Origin: Macrostomum lignano
Taxonomy: Eukaryota
Reading direction: 5' to 3'
Assembly: GCA_002269645.1 (NCBI GenBank)
Contig: NIVC01004600.1
Span: 1 to 30,245, forward strand
DNA: 30,245 nucleotides
Below the pieces are notes generated by a model, which did not search any database, was not told the DNA's origin, and saw only the letters and a program-made list of their open reading frames with translations. The position numbers were made by a program, and so were the translations under genes. This document shows positions 2,467 through 30,245 of the stretch, one piece after another; positions within the stretch are counted from its first letter, which is position 1; each line of letters begins with the position of its first letter.

Positions 2467-2487
2467 TGAACTTCCAATTTCAAATGC

Positions 2488-3571: not shown

Positions 3572-3660
3572 GTTCTCATGCCAGTGAGAATCGAACCCGA
3601 TGTTTCTCCAGCTCAAACCCTTGGAAGACATTGGGAAACTTCAAGACTCAGCTAACCCCT
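3572..3660 (-). mobile_element. Possible tRNA-derived SINE head (box A/box B-like)
   Basis: Minus strand reads GGTTAGCTGAGTC...(~45 nt)...GGGTTCGATTCTC, i.e. Pol III box A-like and box B-like motifs. No full cloverleaf. Confidence 0.3.
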
Positions 3661-4665: not shown

Positions 4666-4696
4666 TATATATATATATATATATATATTTATATAG
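4666..4696. repeat. (TA)n microsatellite
   Basis: tatatatatatatatatatatttatata. Confidence 0.9.
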
Positions 4697-5080
4697 ATTG
4701 GATCAATAACTATCCTTATACTGTAGTATCCAACGGAATTGAACTTCCGGAAGTGCAAACTGACACCAACTAAACTGTCTACACAGCATCCCTGATCCTC
4801 ATACAGCATGGCCTTAAGAATGTCGAGAAGAATTCATGTGTTTTCTCACTGTGCACACATTAATGGTGAGCTGCTGGCCAAATAACTGCGGGTCTATATC
4901 GCCTCTATCGTCAATAGGTACAAGTGTCAATGCAGTTTTCAAAACGGGAGAACTTCTGACACCGCCAAGCATAACTCTATGGCCAAAACTGACTGTGTTT
5001 CTATTTGTGTTCACTTTCTTCTTTTTAGGTGTGTGAGCAGCTCAATTTAATTTCTATTAAGCCATTCTGCGTGCAAATTA

Positions 5081-5845
5081 GGTGCGCCAAACACAGGAGC
5101 GCAAGTTTCAGGTGGCGCCAAACACAGGAGCGCAAGTTTCAGGTGGCGCCAAACACAGGAGCGCAAGTTTCAGGTGGCGCCAAACACAGGAGCGCAAGTT
5201 TCAAGTGGCGCCAAACACAGGAGCGCAAGTTTCAGGTGGCGCCAAACACAGAAGCGCAAGTTACAGGGGGGTGTGGCGCCAAACACAGAAGCGCAAGTTA
5301 CAGGGGGGTGTGGCGCCAAACACACTAGCGCAAGTTACAGGGGGGTGTGGCGCCAAACACAGAAGCGCAAGTTACAGGGGGTGTGGCGCCAAACACAGAA
5401 GCGCAAGTTACAGGGGGGTGTGGCGCCAAACACAGAAGCGCAAGTTACAGGGAGGAGGTGGCGCCAAACACAGGAGCGCAAGTTACAGGTGGCGCCAAAC
5501 ACAGGAGCGCAAGTTACAGCACAGGGAGGAGGTGGCGCCAAACACAGGAGCGCAAGTTACAGGTGGCGCCAAACACAGGAGCGCAAGTTACAGGTGGCGC
5601 TAAACAGAGGAGCGCAAGTTTTAGGTGACGCCAAACACAGGAGCGCAAGTTACAGGTGGCGCCAAACAGAGGAGCAAAAGTTTCAGGTGGCGCCAAACAC
5701 AGAAGCGCAAGTTACAGGTGGCGCCAAACACAGGAGCGCAAGTTACAGGGAGGAGGTGGCGCCAAACACAGAAGCGCAAGTTACAGGGAGGAGGTGGCGC
5801 CAAACACAGGAGCGCAAGTTATAGGCGGGGATCTGGCGCCAAATA
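5081..5845. repeat. Minisatellite, 31-bp core unit GGTGGCGCCAAACACAGGAGCGCAAGTT(T/A)CA with longer G-rich variants, ~23 copies
   Basis: Direct tandem repetition with no unique spacers. It accounts for ORFs 5029-5904. Confidence 0.95.
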
Positions 5846-7171
5846 ACAGATCTATAATATTCTTCGGTCCATTCGGTCACTTCATAACTGCATTCAATGC
5901 GTAAGCCACTTCAATGGCTTCCTCTATTCCAACTCCGGCCCGGCCCGTCCCGCGGCAGAGTGTAAAATGAGAAGGGGTGCCCCCGCAGTTTGATACACGA
6001 GAGCTGCTGCAACTCTTACTGCAGTCACTCCACTCCTCAAACTGAACTGAGCAACTTGAGCTTGCATTACATTCCTTTATTCCTCCATTCCCCCCCCCCA
6101 GCGAGTTGAACACCAGAGTGAAAGTAGAGAGAAAATGACTGTCCGGTGGATTGCAAGCGAGAGAATCGCGGCAATATTTGAGAGCTGCACCACGTGTGTC
6201 GCAGATGGCGTCTCTTGTAGGGACTTTCACCCACCACCCAGCCGCCCGCCACAGTAAAATGCATGCTGCGCGGCCTCTTCAATATAACAGTCGCACCTCG
6301 CTGCAATGTGCATGCTCACTTAAAAAGCTGCCTGCACACCCCGTCCCTCAATCAAACGGTGAATAAAATGGTTGTTTCGGATTGGGAAGAATGTCAGCGA
6401 ATGCAAAAAAAAGTTTCCCAAAAAAATTCATTTTTTTCTCGCAGACCAAAACTCAACATATACTGCGTTGAGCACCTTCTCACTCCCCCCCCTTGAGTCT
6501 ATATTTTCCGCGCTGCACTCAACTGACTCGCGGTCACCAAGCAGGGGTTCCAGCAGTTGATCATGGGGCAAGGCAGGTATAGCCAGAGGTGGTGTCGGGT
6601 GCTGCACTGGGGGCCTCTTAAATTACCAAATAGCCGCACACGGGCGCGTTTTCCTCTCGAAGTTTTTCTTAAATATATTCCATTGGCCGGCTCAACTTCA
6701 CGAACCCGCAAGGGCGGTCGCGAGCAACATCTGTTGTTGAATGTCTTCGCTTTCCATTGCTCTGCTCTGCTCTCTCTCTCTATCCCATGCCATGCCTGTT
6801 TGCCTCACCAGTGACTGCCTATAGAGTTGACTGAAGTATGGCTCTAAGTATACGGCTAGCAAAGTATAATCTATAAAGGAATTGAATTAAAACTAATTTA
6901 TAAAAAAGCACACGGCAGCGCATAGCTAATACTGCAGACAGATGTGCATTATAATAAGAACTAAGGGTCATGGCTATTGATCTTAGATTCTTAGAATTCA
7001 TTCGGTTGCAAGGTCAAAGAATATAACTATAGAAGTTTGCCTACATAGATGTTTATTCTGTTGTTTTTTGCACAAGTTTCTCAAATTAATGCTGTATTCA
7101 TTTTGAGTTGATTTTTAACAGTCGAACAAACACGACTTCACGTTTATATGACTCTCTGCTTCAGTCAGCAA

Positions 7172-7975
7172 TACCTGTCTACCAGTCCATACCTACCTGT
7201 CTACCAGTCCATACCTACCTGTCTACCAGTCCATACCTACCTGTCTACCAGTCCATACCTACCTGTCTACCAGTCCATACCTACCTGTCTACTAGTCCAT
7301 ACCTACCTGTCTACCAGTCCATACCTACCTGTCTACCAGTCCATACCTACCTGTCTACCAGTCCATACCTACCTGTCTACCAGTCCATACCTACCTGTCT
7401 ACCAGTCCATACCTACCTGTCTACCAGTCCATACCTACCTGTCTACCAGTCCATACCTACCTGTCTACCAGTCCATACCTACCTGTCTACCAGTCCATAC
7501 TTACCTGTCTACCAGTCCATACCTACCTGTCTACCAGTCCATACTTACCTGTCTACCAGTCCATACCTATACCTGGTCTACCAGTCCATACCTACCTGTC
7601 TACCAGTCCATACCTACCTGTCTACCAGTCCATACCTACCTGTCTACCAGTCCATACCTACCTGTCTACCAGTCCATACCTACCTGTCTACCAGTCCATA
7701 CCTACCTGTCTACCAGTCCATACCTACCTGTCTACCAGTCCATACTTACCTGTCTACCAGTCCATACCTACCTGTCTACCAGTCCATACTTACCTGTCTA
7801 CCAGTCCATACCTATACCTGGTCTACCAGTCCATACCTACCTGGTCTACCAGTCCATATCTTCCGGGTCTACCAGTCTACACCTACCGGGTCTACCTACC
7901 AGTCTACCTACCAGTCTACACCTACCGGGTCTACCTACCAGTCTACCTAACAGTCTACACCTACCGGGTCTACCA
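7172..7975. repeat. Minisatellite, 22-bp unit CTACCTGTCTACCAGTCCATAC (~30 copies) grading into a divergent CTACCTACCAGTCTACACCTACCGGGT variant
   Basis: Direct tandem repetition. It accounts for ORFs 7108..7950 and 7148..8029. Confidence 0.95.
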
Positions 7976-8911
7976 ATTTATCTACCTAAACAGTCCACAA
8001 CTACCACCCTATCATTCCATTTACCATAGTAACAGATTTTGTTCAGAAAAAAATTAGAGTCTATATTACCAAGCGTAATGCAAACAGAGTAATCTATAAG
8101 CACAAAAAATACGTACGAGTATAACAGACACAGGACTATAGCACAGATTATTTAGGCTAAACTGTCAAAGTCACTCTACATAATAAGATTAAGACTGGTG
8201 CCCAGCACCGAATATTGTTGTATAACGTATGTATATCATAAATTCTTCACTGACAACACAACCGACAACCTGAGCTCATTGTACGCTCGTATATTCATTC
8301 AGGACAAGCTTCATAGTATGGGGGGAACCATACCTTTCTGAACCAAAAGTATGTACATAATTAGCTCTTCACCCACCCCCCCCCGAGGGACTTTGTCTCA
8401 CTGTCAAGTGCATAGCACTCTGGCAATAAGGGGATTATTTTCCCAAACAATACTCTGGCTTAGCTAGACTGGGCCGGATTAACAAATCCACGAGGCTCAC
8501 TCACTGCTCCCCCCCCGCTCACGAGGAAGCAAATTCCCAAAATGTGGACAAGCACCTCACCTCACCTCATCCCAAATATGATCCCAAATCCCAATGAAAA
8601 TTATGCTTCTCCAGTCTCCCGATCCCTCGGAGACGCGGCATCGTGAGCTGCACGAAAATTTCCCCAGCGGCACTCGTCCCCATTGGACGGGATAAATCTC
8701 CCGCCAGCCAATAGGAAGAGGCTAGCGGGGATCGGCTGAGGGTTCGGGGCCTCCTCCCCGACTCTGTTTGGGATTTATTAGCCGCCCAGCTGGGGAGCGA
8801 TCGATTCTCCCACCAACATCCCATAAAAATCCCAACAACTAAAGAGCTCCTCCCACAGCCCACAAAATATCCACAAAGCTTGTTCCTAAATATACACAAA
8901 ATAATCTGAGA

Positions 8912-9076
8912 ATGCAGAAATCCCACAGCAAGCGGCTCGCCCCGCCAGAGGCCTGTCTGGCCGGCGTGGTGGCCGCCGAGGCCATCCCGGAGGGCCAGCG
9001 GACCGGACGGCTGGCCGAGGCGCCGCAGTTTGCCCGGACACTGCGCGACGAGCGACAGGTCGCGAACTTTGTAGCG
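8912..9076 (+). CDS. PRDM13: PRDM13 orthologue, exon 1 (start of PR/SET domain)
   Basis: ATG at 8912 with an in-frame TAA just upstream. Reads MQKSH...AEAIPEGQRTG...NFVA, then donor GTAAGT at 9077 (phase 0). It joins in frame to exon 2. Confidence 0.75.
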
Positions 9077-9145
9077 GTAAGTCTTTTAGTTGGCGTTTTG
9101 GGTAACAGACGAGAGTAACTTGACTAAATATCCCTGCGCTTAGAT

Positions 9146-10090
9146 GGGGGGGGGGCGAACTCCGGCCCGCGAATCCTCTCTATCCGGCCGTCGGGTCCTT
9201 TGAAACTTCACAATAGCAATCTGGCCCGCTCAAGGTTCGTCTCTTCTCTCCCCTCTTCTCTCCTCTTCTCTCGCCTCATCTCACCCCTCTTCTCTCCCCT
9301 CTTCCCTCCCCTCTTCTCTCCCCTCTTCTCTCCCCTCTTCCCTCCCCTCTTCTCTCCCCTCTTCTCTCCCCTCTTCTCTCGCCTCATCTCACCCCTCTTC
9401 TCTCCCCTCTTCCCTCCCCTCTTCTCTCCCCTCTTCTCTCCCCTCTTCCCTCCCCTCTTCTCTCCCCTCTTCTCTCCCCTCTTCTCTCGCCTCATCTCAC
9501 CCCTCTTCTCTCCCCTCTTCCCTCCCCTCTTCTCTCCCCTCTTCTCTCCCCTCTTCCCTCCCCTCTTCTCTCCCCTCTTCTCTCCCCTCTTCTCTCCCCT
9601 CTTCCCTCCCCTCTTCTCTCCCCTCTTCTCTCCCCTCTTCTCTCCCCTCTTCCCTCCCCTCTTCTCTCCCCTCTTCTCTCCCCTCTTCCCTCCCCTCTTC
9701 TCTCCCCTCTTCTCTCCCCTCTTCTCTCCCCTCTTCTCTCCCCTCTTCTCCCCTCTTCTCTCGCCTCATCTCACTTCTCTTCTCTCCCCTCTTCTCTCCC
9801 CTCTTCTCTCCCCTCTTCTCCCCTCTTCTCTCGCCTCATCTCACTTCTCTTCTCTCCCCTCTTCTCTCCCCTCTTCTCTCCCCTCTTTTCTCCCCTCTTC
9901 TCTCACCTCATCTCTCCCCTCATCTCTCCCCTCTTCTCTACCCTCTTCTCTCTCTCCTCTCTCCTCTTTTCTTTCATCCCATCTCTCGGCCCTCTCTTCT
10001 CTTCTCTCTCATTTTCAATTCCCTTCCCTTATCTGCAGGCATGAGCTGAATTCTTTATCTATAGCCCTTCAGGTAAAAAGGTTTGTCCGG
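9146..10090. mobile_element. Decayed hAT-family non-autonomous element in PRDM13 intron 1, enclosing the CT-rich tract
   Basis: The left end (G)10CGAACTCCGGCCCGCGAATCCTCTCTATCCGGCC...CTGGCCCGC resembles one end of the intact hAT at 14856-15789 and is also preceded by CTTAGAT. The right end GCCCTTCAGGTAAAAAGGTT (10064-10083) resembles the other end. The outermost TIR bases and TSD are not intact. Confidence 0.45.
9240..10010. repeat. Polypyrimidine tandem repeat, 12-bp period (CCCTCTTCTCTC / CCCTCTTCCCTC, occasional CTCGCCTCATCTCAC)
   Basis: About 770 nt nearly all C/T. It accounts for ORFs 9200..10147, 9208..9495 and 9497..9769. Confidence 0.95.
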
Positions 10091-10174
10091 GTAAACGGCG
10101 TGAGTAACTATTACTACTTTATGATATTTAAATGCTCCGTCATCTAAGTAGCTAAATGCGAATGCTTCCACCAG

Positions 10175-10463
10175 GTCCGCCCGGTGTTCCGTAAGCAGTC
10201 GACGGATGTCGGAGGCATCGTGGACGAGCAGGGCGGCTTGGCCTGGGTCACCCGGCTGCAGGGGGCGCGCGACCGGGCCGAGCAGAATCTCGAGCTGCTG
10301 CTACAGGAGGATCCGACTGAGGAGACGCCGGAGGGAACTCGGAGGGGATTTTGGTTGAGAGCGACTCGCGAGATTCGACCCGGAGAGCAGCTGCTGGTCT
10401 GGTTTTCCGACGCTTGCGCCATGCAGCTGGGAGTTCCCGTGCTGTCTGTGCTCAACATCAGAG
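10175..10463 (+). CDS. PRDM13: PRDM13 orthologue, exon 2 (PR/SET domain core)
   Basis: Acceptor CCACCAG ends at 10174. Reads ...[21 protein letters not shown]...[20 protein letters not shown]..., the PR-domain pattern (WxxxxxxARxxxEQNL; RxIxPGEELxVWY). Donor GTGAGC at 10464 (phase 1). Confidence 0.9.
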
Positions 10464-10469
10464 GTGAGC

Positions 10470-10804
10470 GAGATGGGATCGGAGATGGGATCGGAGATGG
10501 GATCGGAGATGGGATCGGAGATGGGATCGGAGATGGGATCGGAGATGGGATCGGAGATGGGATCGGAGATGGGATCGGAGATGGGATCGGAGATGGGATC
10601 GGAGATGGGATCGGAGATGGGATCGGAGATGGGATCGGAGATGGGATCGGAGATGGGATCGGAGATGGGATCGGAGATGGGATCGGAGATGGGATCGGAG
10701 ATGGGATCGGAGATGGGATCGGAGATGGGATCGGAGATGGGATCGGAGATGGGATCGGAGATGGGATCGGAGATGGGATCGGAGATGGGATCGGAGATGG
10801 GATC
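10470..10804. repeat. Perfect 12-bp tandem repeat (GAGATGGGATCG) x ~28, filling most of PRDM13 intron 2
   Basis: 335 nt with no mismatch seen. It accounts for the GDGI, PSPI, SEMG and SHLR ORFs. Confidence 0.97.
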
Positions 10805-10860
10805 CTATTTCGGAGATCAAATCTCAACATGATCAAATTGTTCCCTTCACCAACCCGCAG

Positions 10861-11185
10861 CGCATCACTGCTACCAGTGCCACCTGTGCCAGAGGAAGTT
10901 TCTCCACCCGAACGTGCTCAAGGCGCACCTGATGCACGCATGCACCAGCGACTCGCTGCACCAACATCAGCAGCACCGCCTGGCCCCTCCACCGCTCCAT
11001 CTGCCGTCGCCGCACCCGCTGCAGCTTCAACAGTTGCAGATGCAGCTCCAGCTGCAGCTGCAGCTTCAGCGCGGCATTCTCGAGTTCGCCGCCAACCATC
11101 GGGTCGCTCCTCCGCCGGACCTGCTCGCCCTGCTCCGCCGGTTCGGCCAGCAGCCTCCGTCATCTGCACCGACGCTGCCACCGCC

Positions 11186-11216
<31 letters not shown>

Positions 11217-11891
11217 CAGCTGATGTCGAAGCCGCGCCATCGCCGACCCTGGGAGGAGGATGATGACGTCATTGTCGATCACAACGACGACGAGATGCAA
11301 CAGCAGCAACAGCATCAGCATCATCGTAATCATCGGCACACGACCTCCTTCGACTGCAGCGTCGCGGGTAGCACAGCATCAACGTCCACACCTTCGTCGA
11401 CGCCGAAAAAGTTGGAGCCCCCGACTGTTGATCGCCAGCAGCAGCAGCAGCAGCGTCAGGAGAAGGACGAGGAGATGGCCGAGTCGCCGCTGATGCTCCG
11501 TGACGTCAGTCCGACTCTGTCCGCTGTCGCTGCGCCGTCAGCCATGGAGCTGCCCAGCGACGCGGAGCCTCTGGACCTGATCCCGCGCTCGCTGTACACC
11601 TGCAAGTCCAACAAGGGCCACCTGTGCATCTACTGCGGCAAAGTGTACTCGCGCAAGTACGGTTTGAAAATTCACCTGCGAACTCATACCGGCTACAAGC
11701 CGTTGAAATGCCGCGTCTGTCTGCGGCCGTTCGGCGATCCCAGCAACCTGAACAAGCACATCCGCTTGCACGCCGAGGGCGACACGCCGTATAGGTGCGA
11801 ATTCTGCGCCAAGGTGCTGGTCCGCCGGCGCGACCTGGAGAGGCATCAACGCTCGAGGCATCCGGACCGACTGATTATGATGGGGAAATAA
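10861..11891 (+). CDS. PRDM13: PRDM13 orthologue, exon 3 (N-terminal zinc finger, polyQ/polyP linker, three C-terminal C2H2 fingers); spliced CDS 1485 nt, 494 aa
   Basis: Acceptor CCGCAG ends at 10860. The first finger reads [25 protein letters not shown]. The C-terminus [83 protein letters not shown] is nearly identical to the PRDM13 finger array as recalled. Intron phases are consistent. Confidence 0.93.
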
Positions 11892-12268
11892 GCTCCAGAA
11901 ACCTTGATTTCTACTTATATGAGTAGCATAGTTAGTAAAACTTTATTTAACTTCCTTGAGAAGCTTATCAATAACTTTTTTAAATTATAACAATCCCTTT
12001 CATTATTGAAATTGCAACAAGACTCTAATAAAAAAATTTAACCAAGCATCCGTGCGTACATGTCTCTTGCGTGTTTTTGCTTTCAGTTCTGCTTGCTTTT
12101 CGTCACGTTTAAAATTATTGATCTCTTAAATATATGAAATTTAAATTAATAATAAATTAGCAAATGCACGATCATATTATTTCAATGCTATGCTATGCAT
12201 GTCAATGCTTCTTACCGATCAACATCCAGCGGCTTGTACTTTAATTTTCTGGCTTGAAGAAAATATCC

Positions 12269-12637
12269 ATTCTGTAATAGTAGGTAGAGATTTGTGTAAC
12301 AGTAGGTAGGGATTCTGTAACAGTAGGTAGGGATTCTGTAACAGTAGTTAGGGATTCTGTAACAGTAGGTAGGGATTCTGTAATAGTAGGTAGGGATTCT
12401 GTAACAGTAGGAAGGGATTCTGTAATAGTAGGTAGGGATTCTGTAACAGTAGTTAGGGATTCTGTAACAGTAGGTAGGGATTCTGTAACAGTAGGTAGGG
12501 ATTCTGTAACAGTAGGGATTCTGTAACAGTAGGTAGGGATTCTGTAACAGTAGGTAGGGATTCTGTAACAGTAGGTAGAGATTCTGTAACAGTAGGTAGA
12601 GATTCTGTAACAGTAGGTAGGGATTCTGTAACAGTAA
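12269..12637. repeat. Minisatellite, 21-bp unit GATTCTGTAACAGTAGGTAGG, ~17 copies
   Basis: Direct tandem repetition. It accounts for the minus ORFs 12212-12953. Confidence 0.95.
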
Positions 12638-12893
12638 GTGCAGGGCATTGTTGAAAGACTTCAACAATGTGAAATTTCAAGCTTTTAAGTGTCGAGCCAG
12701 AGAAAATGGCCTGCTGAATGATTTGGCAGTCTTGTCTTGTGTCTAATTTGTCTATGGCCGAAACCCACCGAAGGTAATACCGCTGTTCATGGGCGAATTG
12801 ATTGTCAACGAAAGCTTTCTCGCGAACTATTGTTATACAGCAATAATTTAACTTATATAAATTATAACAATAATTTATTGTTATAATTGAAGG

Positions 12894-13085
12894 ATGGCAC
12901 GTCAACATGACAAGCCGAAGTACTCCACCATGTGGGGCATGGAGTACACTCACAACGGTAATTTAGTCACACTGCGCAGTCATACGCCTAGCGTTAGATT
13001 TCGCGTTATTGGCGAGTCTCAAACGGAGACCAGGGATGCATTTGAGACTTTTGCGGTGCCCAACAAGCAACGATCTCTGCCTGTG
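12894..13085 (+). CDS. Putative exon 1 of the calmodulin-like EF-hand gene
   Basis: ATG at 12894, an EF-hand helix-E-like segment ETRDAFETFA, and donor GTGAGT at 13086 (phase 0). A phase-compatible acceptor CAG ends at 13689. The junction is inferred. Confidence 0.45.
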
Positions 13086-13129
13086 GTGAGTCTGGGGTTG
13101 CGGCGAATACAATGTTAGAGGGGCCTGCA

Positions 13130-13510
13130 AGAGCCGCCAGCAAGAAGCGCCAGCCGAAACTGGCGCCACCATAAGAGAGGCGCCACAAGCAATGAGGTGG
13201 CGCACACAGTAGTGAGGGGTGCCACCCAGCAATGAGAGGCGCCACCAGCAATCAGAGGCGCCACCAGCAATGAGAGGCGCCACCAGCAATGAGAGGCGCC
13301 AACAGCAATGAGAGGCGCCAGCAGCAATGAGAGGCGCCAGCAGCAATAAGAGGCGCCACCCAGCAATGGGGGCGCCAGCAATGAGAGGCGCCACCAGCAA
13401 TGAGAGGCGCCAACAGCAATGAGAGGCGCCAGCAGCAATAAGAGGCGCCAACCAACAATGAGGGGTGCCACCCAGCAGTGAGGGGCGCCATAAGCAATGA
13501 GGGGCGTCAC
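13130..13510. repeat. Minisatellite, ~19-bp unit CAGCAATGAGAGGCGCCAC, in the predicted intron
   Basis: Direct tandem repetition with a GGCGCC core and GGTGCC variants. It accounts for the minus ORFs 12963-13711. Confidence 0.92.
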
Positions 13511-13689
13511 AGGAACGAAGATGAAGGCAGTAAAAATAAAAGAGCTGCATTGACGTATGCTATTCAGCAGAAACATTATATTTATGATGCCTGATATACA
13601 AGCTACTAATGATAACACTATATGCATTTTTAGTAGAGAGAATGTACGAGCAATTTGGCATCCTGTTGAACTCACCCACCCGCAAGCAG

Positions 13690-14277
13690 TCTGAAGACGT
13701 CGCGTCGCCATTCCCGGACATCAAGCCCCAGAACTACGCCGCGCTGCTATTCAACTGCTACTACAAACGGCAGAGCGACAGGCGCCGACAGGGCGGCAGA
13801 AACCACAAGCACAACGAGCCGAAGCTGTCCGAGTCGGAGGTTGGCAGATTTTTGCGCACCTTCCACGGCGGCCTGTCGGCGCAGCGGGTGGCCACCATGG
13901 TCTCGTCCGCTACTGGGGCCGTAGTGAATCAAGTGGGTCGCAACGAGTTTAATATTCTATGCTCGGCTTACCTACCGGTGATTCCGTGCCTGGATTACCT
14001 GTTGGAATACCTGGAGGCTGACGCTGACGAAGTCGGCATCATCAACGGATCGGTTGCCGCGCAGCTGCTCGAGCGTCACGGCTTCCTTGAAGCTGCCCGT
14101 TGGCTTCGACGACGAAAGGAGCCGTCGGCGACGCCGATCGCCTATCCGCAGCTGCTGCACCTCATGGGCCTGCCAAGCTGCTCGCCTTGGAGCCAGCGGA
14201 GCTCGTCCGGCACCACTGGGACGACTGTATCCACCAACGGCATGGCGCCAGTGACGGTGACCTGCGATCGGCCTTGA
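13690..14277 (+). CDS. Degenerate calmodulin-like EF-hand protein, main exon (259 aa if joined to 12894-13085; alternatively from ATG 13642)
   Basis: LSESEVGRFLRTFHGGLSAQRVATMVSSATGAVVNQVGRNEFNILC aligns by eye to calmodulin EF1 helix F through EF2. DADEVGIINGSVAAQLLERHG aligns to EF3 and IAYPQLLHLM to EF4 (VNYEEFVQMM). GC-rich, coding-like ORF. Confidence 0.65.
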   Translation, partial: SEDVASPFPDIKPQNYAALLFNCYYKRQSDRRRQGGRNHKHNEPKLSESEVGRFLRTFHGGLSAQRVATMVSSATGAVVNQVGRNEFNILCSAYLPVIPCLDYLLEYLEADADEVGIINGSVAAQLLERHGFLEAARWLRRRKEPSATPIAYPQLLHLMGLPSCSPWSQRSSSGTTGTTVSTNGMAPVTVTCDRP

Positions 14278-14855
14278 ATGTTGGAGTGTTGTTTCGATAA
14301 ATAATCGCAAATTCTTATTCTACCGACAAGTTGGAATGTAGAATTAAGTAGATTTTATTGGTTGGTACAGTTGGTACGAGTACGTTGTTACGCCCGACAT
14401 ATCTCTGCATCTGTTTGATTGATTTTGATGAAAAATGACAGATACATGGGCACATATGTAATGAGTTCAGTGCTAAAATTTTAGCTTAATCGAGTTGACA
14501 GAACCAAAGCAATCGATCTCAACTGTGGAACCTACAGAATTAGCAGTACGATTTTAAACTGAAAAAAATGTAAAAGTTGTTCCGGAACTTCAAAAAGCAT
14601 CGGCAACTCATCAATCCACGCCGACCACGTGCCACTAGGTGTCGCTCTGATCAGCCCCTCAGCAGCCGCTTGCAGCTCGGGGGAAGCTGGCAAACCGCTG
14701 GCCTCAGGGACTCATCTTGCGCGATGAACCTGCTCTTGAACTCGTCTCCCAGAGCTGAAACTGCCGTCCTTTGTTGCAAGCAGACTTCGTGTGTCGGCGA
14801 TTCTTCTGCTAAAAAATTCGCTAGCCATTCTTACACCCCATTTGACCCCTTAGAT

Positions 14856-15789
14856 CAGGGGTCGGCAACCTTTTTCCACTTGAGGGCCAGATGAGGTTTT
14901 CAGTTCAAGACGACGGGCCACAGGTCGCCCCCGATTATTTCACCCCCTGGGTCTTTCTTTACCCTCCAGTATCTGCCCCACTGGGTCTTTACCCTCCTGA
15001 ATCCGCCCCCTGGATCTTTACCCTCCAGTATCTGCCCCACTGGGTCTTTACCCTCCAAAATTCGGCCCCTTGGGTCTTTACCCTCCAAAATTCGGCCCCT
15101 TGGGTCTTTACCCTCCAGTATCTGCCCCACTGGGTCTTTACCCTCCAAAATTCGGCCCCTGGATCTTTACCCTCCAGTATCTGCCTCACTGGGTCTTTAC
15201 CCTCCAAAATTCGGCCCCTTGGGTTTTTACCTTCCAGTATCTGCCCCACTGTGTCTTTACCCTCCAGAATTCGCCCCTGGGTCTTTACCCTCCAGAATCT
15301 GCCGCCTGGGTCTTTACCCTCCAGAATTCGTCCCTGGGTCTTTACCCTCCAGAATTCGCCCCTGGGTCTTTACCCTCCAGAATCCGCCGCCTGGGTCTTT
15401 ACCCTCCAGAATCCGCCCCTGGGTATTTACTAAATTACTACATTTGTACTCCAGTTGTTGGCCAGCCACCACCTCACTTTCCTTCGCCCCCAGTTCCCCT
15501 ATTTCTATTCTATTCGAAAGTTTGAACTGATGTGCTGTCCGTCTTCTAGAGTTTGTAAACAGCCAGTTACACGATCAGTTCGTGTCTCATTACTAATTTG
15601 TCATTGAAATTGCCAATTGAGGAAAGAAATTCCCCATTTTAGTGCACAAAACTTTTGTGGGAGAAACAATGAAGTTACAATGAAGGTGCGGGCCGGATTA
15701 TAGTAATTAAGATTAAGGAAGTTCGCGGGCCGCATAGAAAGTCTTTGCGGGCCGGATCTAGCCCGCGGGCCGGAGGTTTCAGACCCCTG
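14856..15789. mobile_element. Non-autonomous hAT (Charlie/MER5-like) DNA transposon, 934 bp, with TIRs and 8-bp TSD
   Basis: Left TIR CAGGGGTCGGCAACCT versus reverse complement of the right end CAGGGGTCTGAAACCT (14/16 match). Identical 8-bp flanks CCTTAGAT at 14848-14855 and 15790-15797. Four GCGGGCCG subterminal repeats near the right end. No transposase ORF. Confidence 0.92.
14940..15425. repeat. Minisatellite inside the hAT element, 28-30-bp unit TGGGTCTTTACCCTCCAGAATCCGCCCC, ~17 copies
   Basis: Direct tandem repetition. It accounts for ORFs 14891-15530. Confidence 0.95.
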
Positions 15790-18039: not shown

Positions 18040-19487
18040 ATGACATCGCGCTCTCTCACCATTCCTGCGGTGGGCCATCCATACAGCCTTGGTGCGCTGT
18101 ACAACAGCAGGACCAGCCAAATCATCCCCGGAGTCAAGTTATTCACCGCCGAGCAGATGAAGAAGATGCTGGATGCATCTAAAAACATCAGCATGGAGAC
18201 CGATATCGTAACAGAAACGTCAGCGAACAGTAAAAACCTGAGCACAAAAGTGAGTGGAAATCTGTCGCTGTCAATTCTATCGGGACTGGTGTCCGCTAGC
18301 GGCTCCGGGAACCATCAAACTGCATTAAAAGAGAAAAGAGAGACGGAGAGCGCCATATTTCGACTGCAAGTTCATGGAAAGTATGAGGAACTTGTTCTCC
18401 CACCGGGTTTGAAGCTGAAGAGCTCAGCGAGCTACAAAGATGCCACTCACGTAGTGTTGGGAATTCAGTACGGCGGGGCTGCTCTGTTCTTTTTCGAGCG
18501 GGACAAAGAAGACTCCGCAACGAGCGACAAAGCCGGAGGCGGTCTAAAAGCTCAGATTGGCAAGTTTGCATCGGTGGTCAGCATCTCTGGAGCTGCCTCG
18601 CTTGACATGACGTCGGAGGAAACGAAAGTCATGCAGAAGATCCGAGTTGCCTACAAAGGAGACTTCCACCTGGCCAGCCCACCGACCAACTTCATTGAAG
18701 CCATGAAGTGCATTCAAACAATCCAAGCTGCTGAAGCTAGATCGCCACTGACGGTCAACCTGCTTCCTCTGTCACTGCTGGTTGAAGACGCTCCACCAGC
18801 TCCCCTGCCACTACCGCGCACGTGCATCTCTAAAACTGTTCGCTGCTACGATGTGCTGAAAGAAGCTCTGACTACTCTGCAGGAAATTACTTACAAGCTG
18901 AGACCGACAGCGTGGACTCACGTGGTGAAGAAGCTGGAAGCGGAACTTCGGGAGCTCGAATCATTCAAGTCTTCCCTTGATGATGCTGTGAGGGAAGCTG
19001 TTCTAGATCACACGGCTGAGCCCGCTAATCGTGCGAAAAAATTGAGTTAAAAACGGGCCTTTTCGATGCCGGAAAAAAGTACGCTCACCTACAGGAATGG
19101 GCCACCGCAGTCGCCGATGCCGGTGACGTTCTGGTTGTGATTTCCAATAAGTTCCGGGAGGCTGGCGCTCAGATAATTCAAAGCCAAGCTCAGAGAGCCG
19201 AATTCATCATGAGGAGCATGACAGAACCCAGCCGAAAGATGTACTGCCTGTCTTGCCCAATGAAACTGTTTGAACTGCAAAACTTCAAGCTCCAAGCTGG
19301 ATTGAAACTCTGGAGCGATGAAGAACTGGAGAAGAAGTTTTACAAAACGTTTGTAAAATACTGCCCCACGACAGGAAATCAAAAACAGAAATTTGAGCAA
19401 TCTCTAGCCGCTGTTGAGCAATCCGAGGTTTCTGATTCTGATGCATCCGGAGTGCAGGTGATCTTCCAGAACCTCTCATTAAATTAA
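18040..19487 (+). CDS. Stonustoxin/verrucotoxin-like MACPF/CDC pore-forming protein 1 (MACPF/CDC, helical and thioredoxin-like regions, no PRYSPRY). One frameshift at the A6 run 19036-19041; 482 aa if one A is restored.
   Basis: The N-terminus LTIPAVGHPYSLGALYNSRTSQIIPGVKLF matches SNTX (LVMPALGRPFTLGMLYDARREKLIPGFSLF). MACPF signature ATHVVLGIQYGG. YKGDFHLASPPTNFIEA matches FHGDFLLESLPTTFEDA; PLTVNLLPL matches PMKVWLAPL. A second frame is open from 19029 to 19487 and continues the similarity. No introns in the CDS. Confidence 0.85.
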
Positions 19488-20609: not shown

Positions 20610-22637
20610 ATGCAAACTCAACCGGAGTGCATCCCGTCTCTGGGCCGGCCGTTTCAGCTCGGACAGCTGTACGACATCCGACAGCACCGGATCATTACAC
20701 AGTCGGCCTGGCCATCTGATCGAATTCGGAAAATGACGACTCGGCTGGATGATGCGCCCAGCGTGAGGTTTTCCCTGGACTACGAGTACAGCTCGAAGCG
20801 CCGAGCGGAGCAGCTGGGGCTGAACGCCCAGCTGAGATTTTGCATTGAGTTCAAAGCGTTGTGGTGGACAGTGTACGAGAAGACAATGACAGGATCAGCA
20901 AAATACGTCACCGAGGCAAGCTCCACCGAGACCAGTGGAAGCGTCACTTTGCAGTACGACGTGAAGGGTGCGTTTGAGGAGCTTCAGTGCTGCAACGAGC
21001 TTGTAGACAATGAGAAGAAGTTACTAAGCACTGGTGCAACGCACGTTGTGACAGGAATCCGGTACGGAGGCAAGGCGTTCATTGTCTGCAAAGGCTGGTC
21101 CAATGCGTCCAGCTTCTTCGAGCGAGCAACATCTGACTGTCATGAACTGGTAGATTGGAAGGTGGAACAGTGGATCAGAGATGCTGGGCAGTCTGCCAGA
21201 TCGTTCGCTCAGTTTGGCTTGCCGAACCGCTCTTCAAGTTCTGGCAGCTATCAGATCGAGTGTCACACAGACTTCAAGCAGCCAAGGAAGACAATGAGAG
21301 AGCCACCGGATGTTTTAGAGTATTTTAAATCCTTGGATTCGAGGGATGCGAATCAAGCAATGGAAATCCATCTCACTCCATTGCGCTACTTTTGCCCGTC
21401 GGTTCCAGCTTCAGTCCCAATGACAAAAACGCAACATCTGGAAGATGCCTGCCAGTACCTTCAAGCGTTGAAGGCCGGCTTTGAACATTCCGAGCAACTT
21501 TTGGACAAGATTAGCCGGGAGGCAGAGTTAAACACTTCAATCGGAGAGACACTGCACGGATACAAGAGAGACCTGGACACTCATGTGAGCGAGTACACAC
21601 AGCGGATGCAACAAAGTTTTGTGAATCATCGCACTTCGGACGAGTTTGCTGAAGCTCATCACGCCGGCAGTTTAGACAGCGTCTTCACCTACACCAGCAT
21701 GGACACCTCTTTGAACATGTTTGGTCGCCAAACTACCGACCTCTGCGATTTAAGTGCAAAGCTTCGACAGGGTATTGACGCTACAAGCGCTGAAGAACTT
21801 GAGATGAAAGCAGAAAGATTGGCAAAGGAAATAGAGGACCTTTTTAGCATACACGACTCAAGCAAGCAGCTTGAAGAGCAAATGTCCCCAGGACAGAGCC
21901 AATTTAGAATTAAGCGCACCAGAATCGAAGAAAGAAATCGGGATGATCGGTCCTGCATCACTTGGTGCATCAGGTGTCGAAGTACGTGCCATGAAGACTG
22001 TGGCTATTCCAATAACGAGGATAAAGCAAAGTGCTGTGCCATGAACAGTGATGGATACTGTAAAGAGTGCGGCTGCTACTGGAGACTTCACCGAAACACC
22101 AGCACCGAACAGAGGGAGTTTGAATACTACGAATCTGTTCCCATTGACAAAGTGAGCAAGAAGTATGGAGAAAATACAAACCAGCGCGGTGCTGCGAGGC
22201 GTATCAAGTATCACCTAGGAATGGACGCGAAGATGGCTTTGCAGAAAACGGCCTACAAACTCGTGAGTGCTCACAGGTGCTTCAAAGGCCTGCACCAGGG
22301 CGTCGACTTGGATCAGTTCATTAGAGACAAGCTTCGGTCCAAGCGGCTGGATCCGGAAGATTCCTCCAAATTGATTGAACTGACCAAAGCTATCGATGCA
22401 CGAGTTGAGGATAGAACCGATTACGCTAGGTTTGAATGGCAGTCACGACTGCCGGAACGTCCGACAACGCCGCCGACATTTGGTGCAGTCGGTGCAGACA
22501 GTACAGGCAGTGGTACGGCTCGTATTGGTGCAGCAGTCTTTGGTGCCGGTTCATCCGATTTGTATCGTTCTTTGTACGGTGGGCGACAAAATCGGGATTC
22601 AAATCCCCAGTCTGATCCGGATTGCACTATTAGTTGA
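20610..22637 (+). CDS. Stonustoxin-like MACPF/CDC protein 2, 675 aa, with helical region, Cys/His-rich module and C-terminal CaaX (CTIS)
   Basis: Uninterrupted ORF. CIPSLGRPFQLGQLYDIRQHRII matches the SNTX N-terminus. It has the GSAKY motif, MACPF signature GATHVVTGIRYGG, HTDF and AMEIHLTPL. The C-terminal module reads CITWCIRCRSTCHEDC...KCCAM...YCKECGCYWRLH. Ends GAT TGC ACT ATT AGT TGA. Confidence 0.9.
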   Translation: MQTQPECIPSLGRPFQLGQLYDIRQHRIITQSAWPSDRIRKMTTRLDDAPSVRFSLDYEYSSKRRAEQLGLNAQLRFCIEFKALWWTVYEKTMTGSAKYVTEASSTETSGSVTLQYDVKGAFEELQCCNELVDNEKKLLSTGATHVVTGIRYGGKAFIVCKGWSNASSFFERATSDCHELVDWKVEQWIRDAGQSARSFAQFGLPNRSSSSGSYQIECHTDFKQPRKTMREPPDVLEYFKSLDSRDANQAMEIHLTPLRYFCPSVPASVPMTKTQHLEDACQYLQALKAGFEHSEQLLDKISREAELNTSIGETLHGYKRDLDTHVSEYTQRMQQSFVNHRTSDEFAEAHHAGSLDSVFTYTSMDTSLNMFGRQTTDLCDLSAKLRQGIDATSAEELEMKAERLAKEIEDLFSIHDSSKQLEEQMSPGQSQFRIKRTRIEERNRDDRSCITWCIRCRSTCHEDCGYSNNEDKAKCCAMNSDGYCKECGCYWRLHRNTSTEQREFEYYESVPIDKVSKKYGENTNQRGAARRIKYHLGMDAKMALQKTAYKLVSAHRCFKGLHQGVDLDQFIRDKLRSKRLDPEDSSKLIELTKAIDARVEDRTDYARFEWQSRLPERPTTPPTFGAVGADSTGSGTARIGAAVFGAGSSDLYRSLYGGRQNRDSNPQSDPDCTIS

Positions 22638-23086
22638 ATTTGAATTTTATAATTGTATACGAGTTGACAATTTAATTTAGATTGATCGAAAAGAAGGCAA
22701 AATAGGACGTTACTTCCGAATACGAGCTTAGTAGAATCGAATTATTCTAAATTTAACTGGCTATATATTAGTAATAGCATACGTAGTACCGTCCTGTTTG
22801 CAAATGAATCTTATATAAACTTTAGAGACCCAAGAACGATTACTTACCACTATTTTAGCTATCAGTATTCACCCATGTAATTTATATTATTGAACGTAGC
22901 TTATTCGCATCTTACGCTAATGTTTTACTCTGTAGCTTATATATATTACGAGCAAATCGCACGGTTTGTTACTCTTTTTCAGTATTCGGGTTATAAAATT
23001 AGTATTCGGGCGCAATAAATCACTGTTTCGATGGCGTGTAACTTGGGGTGCATAAAGTGGTCCATTCTAAGACGCTGTCAGGTACA

Positions 23087-26244: not shown

Positions 26245-27319
26245 TTACAGCGCTTCAGGATCGCTGTGACCGTCGTCCATCATTTCAAGTGTTGCCATGG
26301 TGATAGCAAGGCCCATCACCTCGTCGACAAACGCGGAGACGCTCTTTGTGTCGTCCATGATGCTGAGGCCGGCGATGCCAGCGAACTCCCCTCCGCTGGC
26401 CGCGGCAATCTGCGACTCACGGCGTCGATCGCGTGCCATCTCTTTCTGGATCATGACGTCCAAGGACTCGCGTCGCAGCTCCTCCACAATCCCAGCCGTA
26501 GTGGTCGCCTCGCTGATGGTTGACTGCTGGTCGATGCTGGCCGAGCGCGACGATCGAGCGGACGCGGTGGCGGACAACAAGGCGGAAGCACGAGAACCAC
26601 GCCGTTTCGGGCTGACCTCAACTCTACACTGCGTCTGACACTTGTCGTCGGCGGTCTGGAGGCTGAGGGTGTAACAGCCGCTGTCTGAGAGCATCACACG
26701 GTCGATGGCCAGCGAGTAGGACATTCCAGACCGGGTCACTCTATGCCGTGGTCCGTACGTGATCTCCCGACTGCCCTTTGTCCACATGGCAATCGCGCGA
26801 CCTTCGGCAACAAAGATTTTCGTCTCAGTAGAAGCGAATCGCCTTCGTCGATCTCCAAAATACGCGGCAGCGGCTGCTCGATGCGCATCGGCTCGCTGCT
26901 GTAGTCCGTAGCTGAGTTCTGCGTTGCACTGGCTGACTCAGCCGATGGTTCGGCCGCGCCGGCAGCGACAGCCCGCTTGGCAGTTGACGAGGAGTCGTTG
27001 GCCACCCAGAGGAAGGCCGAGTGTTTGGTACGGCCATACGTGTTGAACGCGAGCACCCTATAGAGGCCCTCGTCGGCTCGAGTCACGCCATGAATGGTCA
27101 GCCGGGTTTTTCCTGGTTCAGGCGACTCGGCTTGGACCCTAGCTGGTACGAACGGATCGTCGTCGAGAAGCTCCAAGCCATCCTTCTCCCATTTGAACGC
27201 TGGTGATGGCTGGCCGGAGGCTTCGGCGATCAGCAATACAGTCTGGCCCTGCTCCACTGTCTGGCTGGACAGGGTGCGTGTGAACTTCGGGATGCGGACG
27301 TCCATTGGTGGTGGGCGCT
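26245..27319 (-). CDS. Twitchin/projectin-like giant kinase, last exon: post-kinase Ig5, Ig6 and C-terminal tail (frameshift ~26826)
   Basis: Acceptor TTTCCACAG at 27320. I-set motifs PKFTRTL...F.WEKDG...D.GLY.V.AFN.YG. The second Ig continues in another frame (ETKIFVAEGRAIAMWTKG...DSGCYT). Stop TAA at 26247-26245. Confidence 0.85.
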
Positions 27320-27708
27320 CTGTGGAAAGAAAATCGGTTTATATATAGCTACGAGCGTACAAACGTACGATTATAAACTTGTGGCCATACGAAAGGTCGC
27401 ATGTAGCTTGTACAAATTGAAATTTGTTCCGTAATACCAGTAATTGCTCAATTTTTAAATTCCACTAGATTTGCATGCAGTTGAGCAGCCATTGAGTAAA
27501 ATCTAAAATCTGCTTTAGTAAAGTCTTCATCCATAAGATCTTGAACTCCTGCTCACACTTGAGTACTCGAGTTCAAGCAATTTCTTACATCGAGCTAGCT
27601 GCAACTCTTGAGCAATATTATAGTTCACTTTATTCATAAGCTAAGATTAAACTGAGAAGAAATAGTATTTCCTCTAAAACAGTCCTTATCTTCGAATTTG
27701 TCACTGAC

Positions 27709-28344
27709 CTGCCTCGATGACCCTGCAGGTAGTAGTAGCCTCTCCAGCCATGTTGAATGCAACAGCAGAGAACTCTCCCAGTTCGGCTTGGGTGCAGTTA
27801 AGCACTAGCAGCTCCTGGAAGTCGCCAACATTTTTCACTACAAACTTGCCGCCACTGTTGATTGGCCGGCCGGCGTGGTACCAGCGAACAATCGGCCTTG
27901 GCTGGCCACTAACAGAGCACGCCAGGCTAAATGTCGACTCCAAGTCGACGGCTGTGTCCCTCAGTTTAGCGCTGAACTGCGGCACCCGTTTCAGCGCCAA
28001 CTGCGGTAGAGTCGGCATCGGCTGCTGCTGAGAGGAGACGGCGCGGACGCGCAATGCGCACTCGACATCGTCGAGTCCGTGACGCCCTTCCGCTCGGCAG
28101 GTGTAGACGGCACAGTCCTGCTGCAGCGTGGTCTTGAACCGCAGCATGCAATGGCCAGTCTCTTTGTCAGCTTGCACTTCGATTCTATCCGTGCTGATTA
28201 GCTCTTCTGAGCGGTTCTTTAGCCAGCGCACTCGGTCCCAGGCGCCAGCGCTTCGGTCCAGGAAGCATTCCAAGCGAGTTGCCTGGCCCTCAATGGCTGT
28301 GACGTCCAGCGGGCCGCTTCGGAAGCGCGGACTCGGACCAGGTG
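27709..28344 (-). CDS. Twitchin/projectin-like kinase exon: post-kinase Ig3 and Ig4
   Basis: Acceptor ATTTTAG at 28345 and donor GTCAGT at 27708 (phase 1). Two I-set domains (PRFRSGP...WLKN...DCAVYTC; PQFSAKL...WYHAG...ELGEFS). Confidence 0.9.
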
Positions 28345-28431
28345 CTAAAATAAGCAAAAAATATCGTTGTTTTTTACTATTTAAAAACAATATTGAAATG
28401 AGAGAGCTCTCACCAATTCGTCTGAACTTAC

Positions 28432-28755
28432 CAGAAAGTGCTAGTGTGACTGTAGTAACTGCCTCTCCGTAGATGGAGCTCGCTTTCAGAGAATATTCGC
28501 CGCAGTCGGCAGCAGTCGCCTGAACTATCTCGAGCACGTGCTCGCTGCCTTCAGCGTATACGCGGCATCGATCGGACAGTTCCAGCGGCCGTCCATCGCG
28601 GCACCATCGTACGCTCGGCCGGGACGCTGCAGATGTCACCACGGCGTGGAACCGAGCGTTGGTGCCTGGCACGACCATCTGCGACAGCGGCGGCAGCTGG
28701 ATAATCGGAGCCAGATCAGCCGGCTTCTCCGAGACGGCAACCGAGGATGTTGATT
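28432..28755 (-). CDS. Twitchin/projectin-like kinase exon: post-kinase Ig2
   Basis: Acceptor CCACCAG at 28756 and donor GTAAGT at 28431 (87-nt intron). Reads V.WCRDG...DCGEYSLKASSIYG. Confidence 0.9.
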
Positions 28756-28836
28756 CTGGTGGAATTGTTTTAATTTAGTGGTAAATTTTAGTGTTGATCA
28801 TTGACTAAAAAAGAAAAATAGATATTTTTAGCTTAC

Positions 28837-29700
28837 TCTTGACGCTGACTCGCGCGGAATCCTCTGCTCGACCGCTCTGGTTGACCACTCGGACGCTCCA
28901 GGTTCCTTGATGTTTTTCACTAAGACTCGGCACGTTGACAGTAGTCTCTCCCAGTTTGGTGCGCACGACCACGGAACTGTCGCTTTCGTTGATAGGCACA
29001 TCGTTCAGCGTCCAAACAGGTGTTGGTTCCGGATATCCATTGAAACGGACGCTGAAACTAAGAGAGCTTCCGGTAGCTTGGGTGACGCTGCGAAGCTGAT
29101 CAAGGATCCGAGGCGCCTCAGGCTGTCTATCGAGTCTCACGCTGAGGCTGTTGTCATTGTTGCTAGCATCCTGGCAGGTGCCGCAATGCGCCAGCCGCCC
29201 GATTGGCAGCACGGTCTCGCGGAAACGGCGGCTCTCGGCGATTCTCTGGCGAAGCGAAATTGGATGCAGACGGACGTCGAAGCGCTCCTCACGTGGTGAC
29301 ATGTTGAGCCAGGGATGGTTCAGGCACTGCTCAGCTGTCATCCGCTGTGTTGGCAACGCCACGATAAGTCGCGCAATGAAATCTTTAGCTGTGTCGGAAA
29401 CGTGGGCCCACATCTCGCTGTCAAAGCTGAATTTGCAGTCCCGAATAGCCTGGAAGCGTTGCTGACTGCTTCACCACCGAATGGAGCCAGCCCAGTCAGC
29501 ATGATGTGGCAGAGCACGCCAAGCGCCCACAGATCGGTTGAGCAGCCGCAAGGTTCTTTGCTGACCATCTCTGGCGACAGATACTCCAGGGAGCCAAAGT
29601 TGGCGGTGAAGCTGCGACCCTGCTCGAGACGTTGGCTAAGGCCAAAGTCGATCAGTTTGCAGTCTGATCCGCTGGTTGAAACGAACATCACGTTTTCGGG
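28837..29700 (-). CDS. Twitchin/projectin-like kinase exon: kinase C-lobe, C-terminal regulatory tail and Ig1 (frameshift ~29468)
   Basis: PENVMF...KLIDFG...GSLEYLSPE...TDLWALGV...LTGLAPFGG; AKDFIARL...RMTAEQCLNHPWL. The tail VLPIGRLAHCGT...LDRQPEAPR resembles the twitchin tail (LPPLGRISNYSS...WDRSEAQPR). Donor GTAAGC at 28836. Confidence 0.9.
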
Positions 29701-29785
29701 CTAAAATTACAATTCGAGCATTAATGAAATATACTCCGATCTATTATTAATAACAATTAAAACGCAAGAGTTCGTTTTTGCGCAC

Positions 29786-29927
29786 CTTAACATCCATATG
29801 CACGTAGTTTTTGCGGTGCATGAAGTCTAGACCTTCGCAAACCTGCCTGACGGTAGAGCTAAGCGTTCGCTCCGTCACTGAGTAGTTAGAATCCACGTAC
29901 TTGTCAAATAGATCACCACCGGCAATG
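29786..29927 (-). CDS. Twitchin/projectin-like kinase exon: hinge to catalytic loop
   Basis: (F)IAGGDLFDKY...VRQVCEGLDFMHRKNYVHMDVK. Flanked by an 82-nt and an 85-nt GT-AG intron with consistent phases. Confidence 0.92.
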
Positions 29928-30009
29928 CTAGAATATGATTGGTGACATTCACTTAGAGCTATGTCAGTTGAAAAGTAGTGTTTAAATGGGATAAACGTGC
30001 AACACTTAC

Positions 30010-30245
30010 AATTCCAGCACCAGAACTGTGTCAGTTCGGGAGAAGATGGCTTCGTGCAGGTAGAGCAGCCTGGCGCGTGTTGCAGCTCGCTCATGGTATC
30101 GATTTCATGTTGAACAGCCTCCTGCCGCTGTGCCGCTTGGGGATAAATTTTCCGGCCCAAGTTCGGCCGCTAGTCTTTTCAATCAATCGGCAGACAACGC
30201 CGAAGCCACGCGTCCTAGCTCTTCGCAAACAATGTACTTGGTCTC
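30010..30245 (-). CDS. Twitchin/projectin-like kinase exon: kinase N-lobe (runs off the window; three frameshifts)
   Basis: Four reading-frame segments assemble into KYIVCEELGR(G)GFGVVCRLIEKTSGRTWAGKFIP..AAQRQEAVQHEIDTMSELQH..RLLYLHEAIFSRTDTVLVLE. Breaks at about 30209, 30138 and 30072. Donor GTAAGT at 30009. Confidence 0.8.

Follow-up and report, generated by a model that had tools for sequence, protein, structure and literature searches.

Can a homologue of a pore-forming toxin be held by a prenyl group on membranes that face the cytosol? MACPF/CDC pore-formers are normally secreted proteins, or else a transmembrane (TM) helix anchors them on the lumenal or extracellular face of a membrane. 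The question is raised by a gene of the flatworm Macrostomum lignano on contig NIVC01004600.1 (GenBank assembly GCA_002269645.1), of which positions 1–30,245 of the forward strand, 30,245 nt in all, were analyzed and are referred to here as the window. A first-pass annotation had described the product of one open reading frame (ORF) as a pore-forming-toxin homologue ending in a CaaX prenylation box, and had suggested a cytosolic, lipid-anchored effector acting on internal or pathogen membranes. We find that the ORF probably encodes a cytosolic chimera in which an SNTX (stonustoxin)-type MACPF/CDC head is fused directly to a module of a GTPase family, followed by a flexible tail and the box CTIS. 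The features of the gene are as follows.

20610..22637 (+): complete coding sequence (CDS), 675 aa, BOX15_Mlig004669-type hypothetical protein (ORF list; identical to P0001)
20631..21656 (+): SNTX-type MACPF/CDC domain and helical FAT-like region, residues 8–349 (phmmer, AlphaFold2 model, Foldseek)
21657..21896 (+): linker and long helix/coiled coil, residues 350–429, low confidence (model helices 375–424)
21897..22142 (+): beta-rich domain with eight Cys and two His, probably zinc-binding, residues 430–511 (alignments; predicted local distance difference test, pLDDT, 85–95)
22143..22430 (+): helical part of the module, residues 512–607 (38-member alignment; helices in both models)
22431..22622 (+): disordered Gly/Ala/Ser/Thr/Pro-rich tail, residues 608–671 (pLDDT <50; composition)
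22482..22533 (+): three GGTGCAG heptamers coding Gly-Ala stretches, starting at 22482, 22491, and 22527 (motif count)
22623..22634 (+): CaaX box Cys672-Thr-Ile-Ser675, predicted farnesyltransferase signal, Cys codon 22623–22625 and Ser codon 22632–34 (sequence)
22635–22637 (+): stop codon TGA (sequence)
23014..23019 (+): candidate poly(A) signal AATAAA, the first canonical one after the stop, 377 nt downstream (motif scan only)

The reading frame and its SNTX-type head

The ORF is uninterrupted and consists of a single exon; in the ORF list its product ends ...NPQSDPD-CTIS, the final codons GAT TGC ACT ATT AGT TGA giving D-C672-T-I-S675-stop. Three other genomic copies of the gene (L001, L002, and L003) and the NCBI gene models have exactly the same stop codon and entire tail, so the ending ...PQSDPDCTIS reported in the first-pass annotation, including its stop, stands as read. 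Because the 3′ flank is likewise ~99% identical, the identical tails in these copies confirm the sequence reading and not selection. The cluster of sequences to which the protein belongs (P0001, 90% identity) includes the M. lignano hypothetical proteins PAA49540.1, PAA53511.1, and PAA58965.1 (BOX15_Mlig004669g1/g2).

The description of the N-terminal half as a pore-forming-toxin homologue was borne out by both sequence and structure searches. In a phmmer search against the PDB, residues 8–349 matched stonustoxin beta (4wvm_B) with an E value of 1.7e-13, and stonustoxin alpha (4wvm_A) was matched with an E value of 1.8e-8; the alignment begins at residue 8 in the flatworm protein and in stonustoxin alike, and the head carries the signatures LGRPFQLGQLYD and ATHVVTGIRYGG. 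The Pfam model MACPF_SNTX (PF24674) scored 20.3 bits, which is below its gathering score of 27. An AlphaFold2 model built from a 19-sequence alignment has a strand-helix-cluster-strand topology with core-strand pLDDT values of 70–88, and it agrees with the MACPF/CDC fold, for which a bent central sheet flanked by the TMH1 and TMH2 helical clusters is diagnostic, its TMH2 region being modelled with low confidence. Foldseek placed this model closest to 4wvm_B (E 3.6e-10) and 4wvm_A (E 2.7e-8), both with a probability of 1.0, followed by the Bacteroides MACPF protein 3kk7, C8, perforin, and perfringolysin (PFO), with MPEG1 as a weak match and astrotactin-2 also listed. Although divergent, the head is therefore a true SNTX-type MACPF/CDC domain, accompanied by a helical FAT-like region.

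Homology to SNTX proteins (stonustoxin/neoverrucotoxin, 4WVM; PF24674 and the helical domain PF21109) thus spans the N-terminal ~350 residues, and the flatworm protein shares with them the signatures LGRPF.LG.LYD and ATHVV.GI.YG and the lack of a signal peptide. The full toxin architecture is absent, as the SNTX alignment stops at residue 349 and there was no Pfam match to PF18078, PF13765, or PF00622. SNTX toxins have thioredoxin-like and PRY/SPRY domains that the flatworm protein does not have, and its Cys-rich module and CaaX tail are not seen in SNTX toxins.

A C-terminal module shared with a family of GTPases

Searches with the full-length protein returned sequences from fish and other sources (P0002–P0004) in which an SNTX head is combined with a P-loop GTPase (Pfam Septin, MMR_HSR1, and AIG1), and which show near their C-termini the same cysteine pattern as the CITWCIRCRSTCHEDC...KCCAMNSDGYCKECGCYWRLHRN of the flatworm protein. 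An exhaustive phmmer search with residues 350–675 against 1.84 billion representative proteins yielded 420 proteins with E values of 1e-3 or less, and the non-self matches were all confined to query residues ~430–565. Among these representatives no orthologue was found, the top non-self score being 67 bits, and no match covered the tail (residues 608–675). A word-index search with the C-terminal 245 aa returned no match, self included, the index evidently being too sparse for the module family; with a 38-sequence module profile as the query, the word index gave 7 proteins only.

Two alignments of the module, with 150 and 38 members, revealed that a Thr, eight Cys, two His, and one Lys are invariant or nearly so in both. 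The flatworm protein retains all of them (T451, C453, C456, C460, H461, C464, K472, C475, C484, C487, C489, and H494), and its domain displays the family pattern T.C..C...CH..C...K..C...C..C.C.W..H.N. Downstream, the helical part aligns weakly to the pattern L..IAL.P.PLS..YI..LI..E...GW..R (LRSKRLDPEDSSKLIELTKAIDARVED...RFEWQSRL in the flatworm protein), and phmmer matches rarely pass query residue ~565. A model of residues 421–675 shows the beta-rich Cys domain (pLDDT 85–95) followed by long helices and a disordered tail. Pfam has no model for the Cys-rich module. Matches of the C-terminal half to the Pfam models Fzo_mitofusin and EAD9 (E values 0.016–0.09) fall on the coiled coil and were taken as noise, and Foldseek found nothing in the PDB with an E value below 1 for the module model, its weak top matches being MetRS, LeuRS, and MCM chains of uncertain relevance.

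Domain composition and C-terminal endings were counted in the 149 best module homologues (P0015–P0163). A GTPase domain is present in 101 of them, and 15 have both an SNTX head and a GTPase; none has an SNTX head and the module without a GTPase. Named members include Mugil cephalus LOC125010590, Carassius auratus LOC113093306, Bombina bombina LOC128661240, Paramacrobiotus LOC129581725, and Tetrahymena malaccensis ABPG74_015375, and most of the others are metagenomic eukaryote genes. In relatives, a THX (thioredoxin-like) and a P-loop GTPase domain lie upstream of a coiled coil equivalent to that of the flatworm protein, and in the SNTX-head proteins these two domains separate head and module. 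Both domains are missing in the flatworm, where just ~80 residues separate the head from the module and no G-x4-GK[ST] motif occurs anywhere in the 675 aa.

As judged from the alignments, the C-terminal half is the conserved module of a widespread, unnamed family of eukaryotic AIG1/septin-like GTPases. Given that the module is shared and the P-loop is absent, the flatworm protein is a GTPase-less variant of this existing uncharacterized family and not an SNTX protein that merely acquired a tail. It resembles the family in its coiled coil, Cys-rich domain, tail (30–70 aa in the family), and, by a weak alignment, helices, and a subset of the family also has the SNTX head; it differs in having no GTPase core, which defines the family. 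In the literature searched, no paper dealt with this GTPase/Cys-rich family or with SNTX together with GIMAP/AIG1.

On an ENA metagenome scaffold (L005, 3001–8931), a second gene lies 400 bp downstream of a member that itself ends in a CaaX box (P0074, ...NCIIF), and in Pfam the product of this second gene gives no more than weak or faint P-loop/GTPase matches (MMR_HSR1 weak). Tandem arrays of the module family may therefore exist in this host, which is possibly ciliate-like.

Tail, endings, and predicted membrane attachment

The Gly/Ala/Ser tail with repeated GGTGCAG that the first-pass annotation had pointed out (FGAVGAD...IGAAVFGAG) is present. Residues ~604–675 have pLDDT values below 50 in the module model, and in the full-length model such values begin at residue 543. 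The tail patches FGAVGAD, IGAAVFGAG, and LYRSLY are mildly hydrophobic. Three GGTGCAG heptamers occur within 52 nt of the tail, compared with about 3.9 expected across the whole 30-kb window. An origin of the tail from tandem repeats was considered but is not supported by Tandem Repeats Finder, which shows no array at the tail; the three dispersed heptamers constitute a micro-repeat and not a tandem repeat. The lack of a signal peptide was also upheld: by hydropathy alone neither a signal peptide nor a TM segment was detected (maximum 19-residue Kyte-Doolittle mean 0.77), and the N-terminus is hydrophilic.

CTIS has the Cys at position –4, an aliphatic residue at a2, and at X one of the residues (S/M/Q/A/C) of the farnesyltransferase (FTase) substrate pattern, at the true C-terminus of the protein. 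Since it follows a disordered linker in a protein without a secretion signal, FTase would have access to it. As the first-pass annotation had stated, the same tetrapeptide is the CaaX box of human GBP1, which is farnesylated and which is cytosolic when CTIS is removed (PMC2998424). In human cells, GFP carrying CTIS behind a four-glycine linker (GFP-G4-CTIS) was targeted to the Golgi in a manner sensitive to farnesyltransferase inhibitor (PMC2998424). Homology to GBPs was rejected as an explanation of the likeness, since there is no Pfam or PDB sequence match to GBPs, and only the tetrapeptide is common to them and the flatworm protein, which makes this a functional analogy. Both are cytosolic proteins with the logic of a C-terminal isoprenoid, predicted in the case of the flatworm; GBP1 is a dynamin-like GTPase with a helical GBP domain, whereas the flatworm protein has neither, nor does it have a polybasic patch before the box.

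Independent support for a lipid anchor comes from the endings of the module homologues. A strict CaaX ending is found in 11 of the 149, as compared with 0.76 expected from the per-position frequency of the pattern within the same proteins (binomial P 4e-10), and moving the same pattern 1–11 residues inward gives 0–1 occurrences. The strict pattern is found at ~0.5% of positions in related sequences, making a chance ending unlikely yet possible for any one protein. The 11 endings are CIIV, CSIF, CIIF, CNIL, CLIF (twice), CTIA, CCIF, CVIF, CNIF, and CFIF, and a2 is Ile in all of them, as it is in the flatworm protein. They include those of T. malaccensis (CSIF) and B. bombina (CNIL), the latter from a protein that is 46% identical in the Cys domain and whose ending is the geranylgeranylation box of GBP2 (PMC2998424). 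In a member from a TARA scaffold (...SGCTIA) a TAA stop directly follows in the DNA, and within the CxIF clade the residues preceding the Cys diverge and C-x-I-F/V is retained. The distance from the Cys motif to the CaaX end is 191–209 aa in these homologues and 222 aa in the flatworm protein, with a family median of 196, so the annotated stop also fits the family layout.

The last 12 residues of the homologues are enriched 3.3-fold in Trp and 2.1-fold in Phe, and 37 of 108 complete tails (~34%) combine aromatic (Trp/Phe) with basic (Lys/Arg) residues; a CaaX box closes the tail in about 10% of family members. Together with the recurrent CaaX boxes, these endings make a C-terminal membrane-binding device look like a recurrent property of the module family. 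The lipid-anchor reading of the first-pass annotation holds insofar as a CaaX box follows a disordered linker in a protein that has no secretion signal, but it had overlooked the C-terminal Cys-rich module.

Farnesylation of the flatworm protein is, as far as sequence comparison can tell, rather likely to be functional. The protein would be made in the cytosol, where FTase would farnesylate Cys672, and -TIS would then be removed and the Cys carboxymethylated, cleavage and methylation after farnesylation being the established CaaX pathway. The lipid, together with the Gly/Ala/Phe/Tyr patches of the tail, would keep head and Cys-rich/helical module tethered to a membrane that faces the cytosol, the ~65-residue flexible tail linking anchor and module. 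Such tethering would raise the two-dimensional concentration, upon which the MACPF head could oligomerize and insert. In the GTPase relatives, nucleotide-dependent assembly would gate oligomerization or insertion; the flatworm version, without nucleotide control, would not depend on a GTPase and could be tethered constitutively. Prenylation, membrane targeting, pore formation, and a role in defence are all steps that we infer, and we regard lytic pore formation or a defence role as considerably less likely than functional prenylation.

Genomic copies, rival explanations, and meaning

Two of the other genomic copies, L001 and L002, have identical CDSs that differ from that of the window by 27 nucleotides. 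These differences give a ratio of nonsynonymous to synonymous substitution rates (dN/dS) of 0.65, which has little statistical power at a divergence of about 1.3%. The 3′ flank is 98.7–99% identical between copies, which makes flanking and coding DNA equally similar; this similarity and the identity of L001 and L002 show that the copies are too recent to serve as a conservation test, and they were discarded for that purpose. A fourth copy (L003, 5294–7344 of M. lignano contig NIVC01002314.1) lacks 1 bp in the MACPF region, and its annotated product has 447 aa and starts at an internal Met; the deletion is either an assembly indel or a sign of a pseudogenized copy.

A paralogue of the head lies in tandem upstream of the gene.

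18040..19487 (+): tandem upstream paralogue of the SNTX-type head, 18040–19050 and then in another frame 19137–19487 (tblastn, ORF list)

It is 28% identical over residues 1–176 (tblastn E 1e-10), starts ~2.6 kb ahead of the start codon of the gene under study, and ends 1.1 kb before that gene. The change of frame between 19050 and 19137 represents an intron or a frameshift. The paralogue has no Cys-rich module, no CaaX box (it ends ...NLSLN), and no Pfam match, and it is uninformative about the CaaX box because the whole C-terminal module is missing.

Elsewhere in the window, positions 2051–15430 are dense in minisatellites with periods of 12, 13, 19, 21, 22, 30, and 31 nt, for example at 9241–9972 (12 nt × 62), 7172–7896 (22 nt × 32), and 2490–2993 (22 nt × 23). 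In the region 10184–11891 (+), an ORF whose first ~105 residues match the PR domain of PRDM2 below threshold (Pfam 22.9 bits, cut-off 27) contains at 10470–10804 a perfect 28-copy GAGATGGGATCG repeat that would encode (GDGI)n, and it is overlapped in another frame by a second ORF (10914–11891) with C2H2 zinc fingers; the two ORFs suggest a PRDM-like gene. On the reverse strand, a Ser/Thr protein kinase domain is encoded at 26245–30160 (–) together with Ig I-set repeats, in what looks like the 3′ part of a giant gene of the twitchin/titin/obscurin type. The product encoded next to copy L002 is 7876 aa long and has fn3/I-set repeats.

Several observations weigh against a membrane-tethered pore-former. 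The TMH2 region (residues 183–247) is modelled poorly, with pLDDT values below 50, and together with the sub-threshold score for MACPF_SNTX this makes lytic competence uncertain. The NCBI gene models are the sole sign of expression. The residues directly before Cys672 are acidic (DPD), with no polybasic stretch and no second Cys nearby, so membrane affinity conferred by a single farnesyl may be weak. No orthologue or close paralogue with the tail underpins conservation of CTIS, and none of the 15 relatives with an SNTX head ends in a CaaX box. Seven of the 11 CaaX homologues fall in one clade of a crude neighbour-joining tree that contains about 3–4 groups with such endings, which reduces the independent origins from 11 to about 3–4. 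A dN/dS near neutrality and the 1-bp deletion in L003 are compatible with relaxed constraint, under which the gene pair as a whole may be, given this deletion and the splitting of the paralogue over two frames.

Part of this evidence would also fit an explanation in which CTIS is the chance end of a fast-evolving, low-complexity tail that arose partly by micro-duplication of GGTGCAG, with no functional prenylation and a protein that is soluble in the cytosol, or released without a signal peptide as is stonustoxin in fish. The local heptamer repeat in a low-complexity tail, the acidic residues before Cys672, the lack of the box in SNTX-head relatives, the absence of any orthologue in which it is seen to be conserved, and the ~0.5% frequency of CaaX-like patterns in this Cys-rich family all point that way. 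What makes us doubt it, while leaving it a real if minor chance, is that the box, with Ile at a2 and Ser at X, has the canonical form and has proved sufficient in experiments, that a disordered linker and the lack of a secretion signal would give FTase access, that the length of the tail agrees with the family layout, and that terminal CaaX boxes exceed expectation more than 10-fold in a position-specific manner in homologous modules, which also have other membrane-binding tails. A gene that is decaying is less probable still. The locus would then be a drifting remnant, derived by recombination or deletion from an SNTX-head GTPase gene and deprived of its GTPase, and the CaaX box and other features would be leftovers. 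The missing GTPase and THX domains, a CDS no better conserved than its 3′ flank at a dN/dS of 0.65, the frameshift in L003, the paralogue split over two frames, and the sub-threshold Pfam score of the head are consistent with such decay. On the other hand, the ORF of 675 codons is intact in three copies, the SNTX signatures are kept, as are all invariant Cys, His, Thr, and Lys residues in the Cys-rich domain, dN/dS has no power at a divergence as low as ~1.3%, and the base missing from L003 may reflect an indel of the assembly, which we take to be based on long reads.

It is also conceivable, though in our view unlikely, that the protein is prenylated and membrane-bound but that its head is non-lytic and serves in binding, remodelling, or as a scaffold, as in the astrotactins, with the Cys-rich module mediating protein-protein interaction. 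Non-lytic MACPF proteins exist and astrotactin-2 is among the Foldseek matches; the divergence of the head, its poorly modelled TMH2, and its Pfam score would agree with this. The nearest relatives of the head are nevertheless bona fide cytolysins, and the core signature ATHVV.GI.YGG is retained.

We therefore favour the cytosolic chimera of an SNTX-type head, a GTPase-family module, a flexible tail, and CTIS. Like perforin-2/MPEG1 and the gasdermins, it would be a pore-former pre-positioned on, or acting from, compartments of the host instead of being secreted. With MPEG1 it has the MACPF fold in common (weak Foldseek match), but a lumenal-side TM helix serves as the anchor of MPEG1, and gasdermins, whose fold is unrelated, become active through proteolysis. 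The literature searched contained no prenyl-anchored MACPF protein, no paper that ties MACPF or stonustoxin to CaaX boxes or prenylation, and none that ties stonustoxin to Macrostomum.

If the chimera is as we propose, a prenyl-anchored cytosolic member would represent a new way of deploying the MACPF/CDC fold and would raise the question of whether the cytosol-facing membranes that it targets are those of organelles, vacuoles, or intracellular microbes. The most valuable lead, which may outweigh the flatworm case, is the pattern across the family, in which GTPases bear SNTX heads and have lipid or aromatic tails. More speculatively, and with a low expectation that it holds, SNTX-type heads in general might be the effector ends of cytosolic, membrane-anchored AIG1/septin-like GTPase machines with a zinc module and a lipid or aromatic-basic tail, forming an ancient eukaryotic system of cell-autonomous membrane attack, similar in its logic to GBPs combined with pore-formers, that extends from ciliates to vertebrates and of which the flatworm protein would be a GTPase-free, farnesyl-tethered minimal version. 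The family-level pattern provides a testable hypothesis for a non-venom role of the many “stonustoxin-like” genes in animal genomes, and the flatworm protein, being small and free of a GTPase, could serve as its test case.

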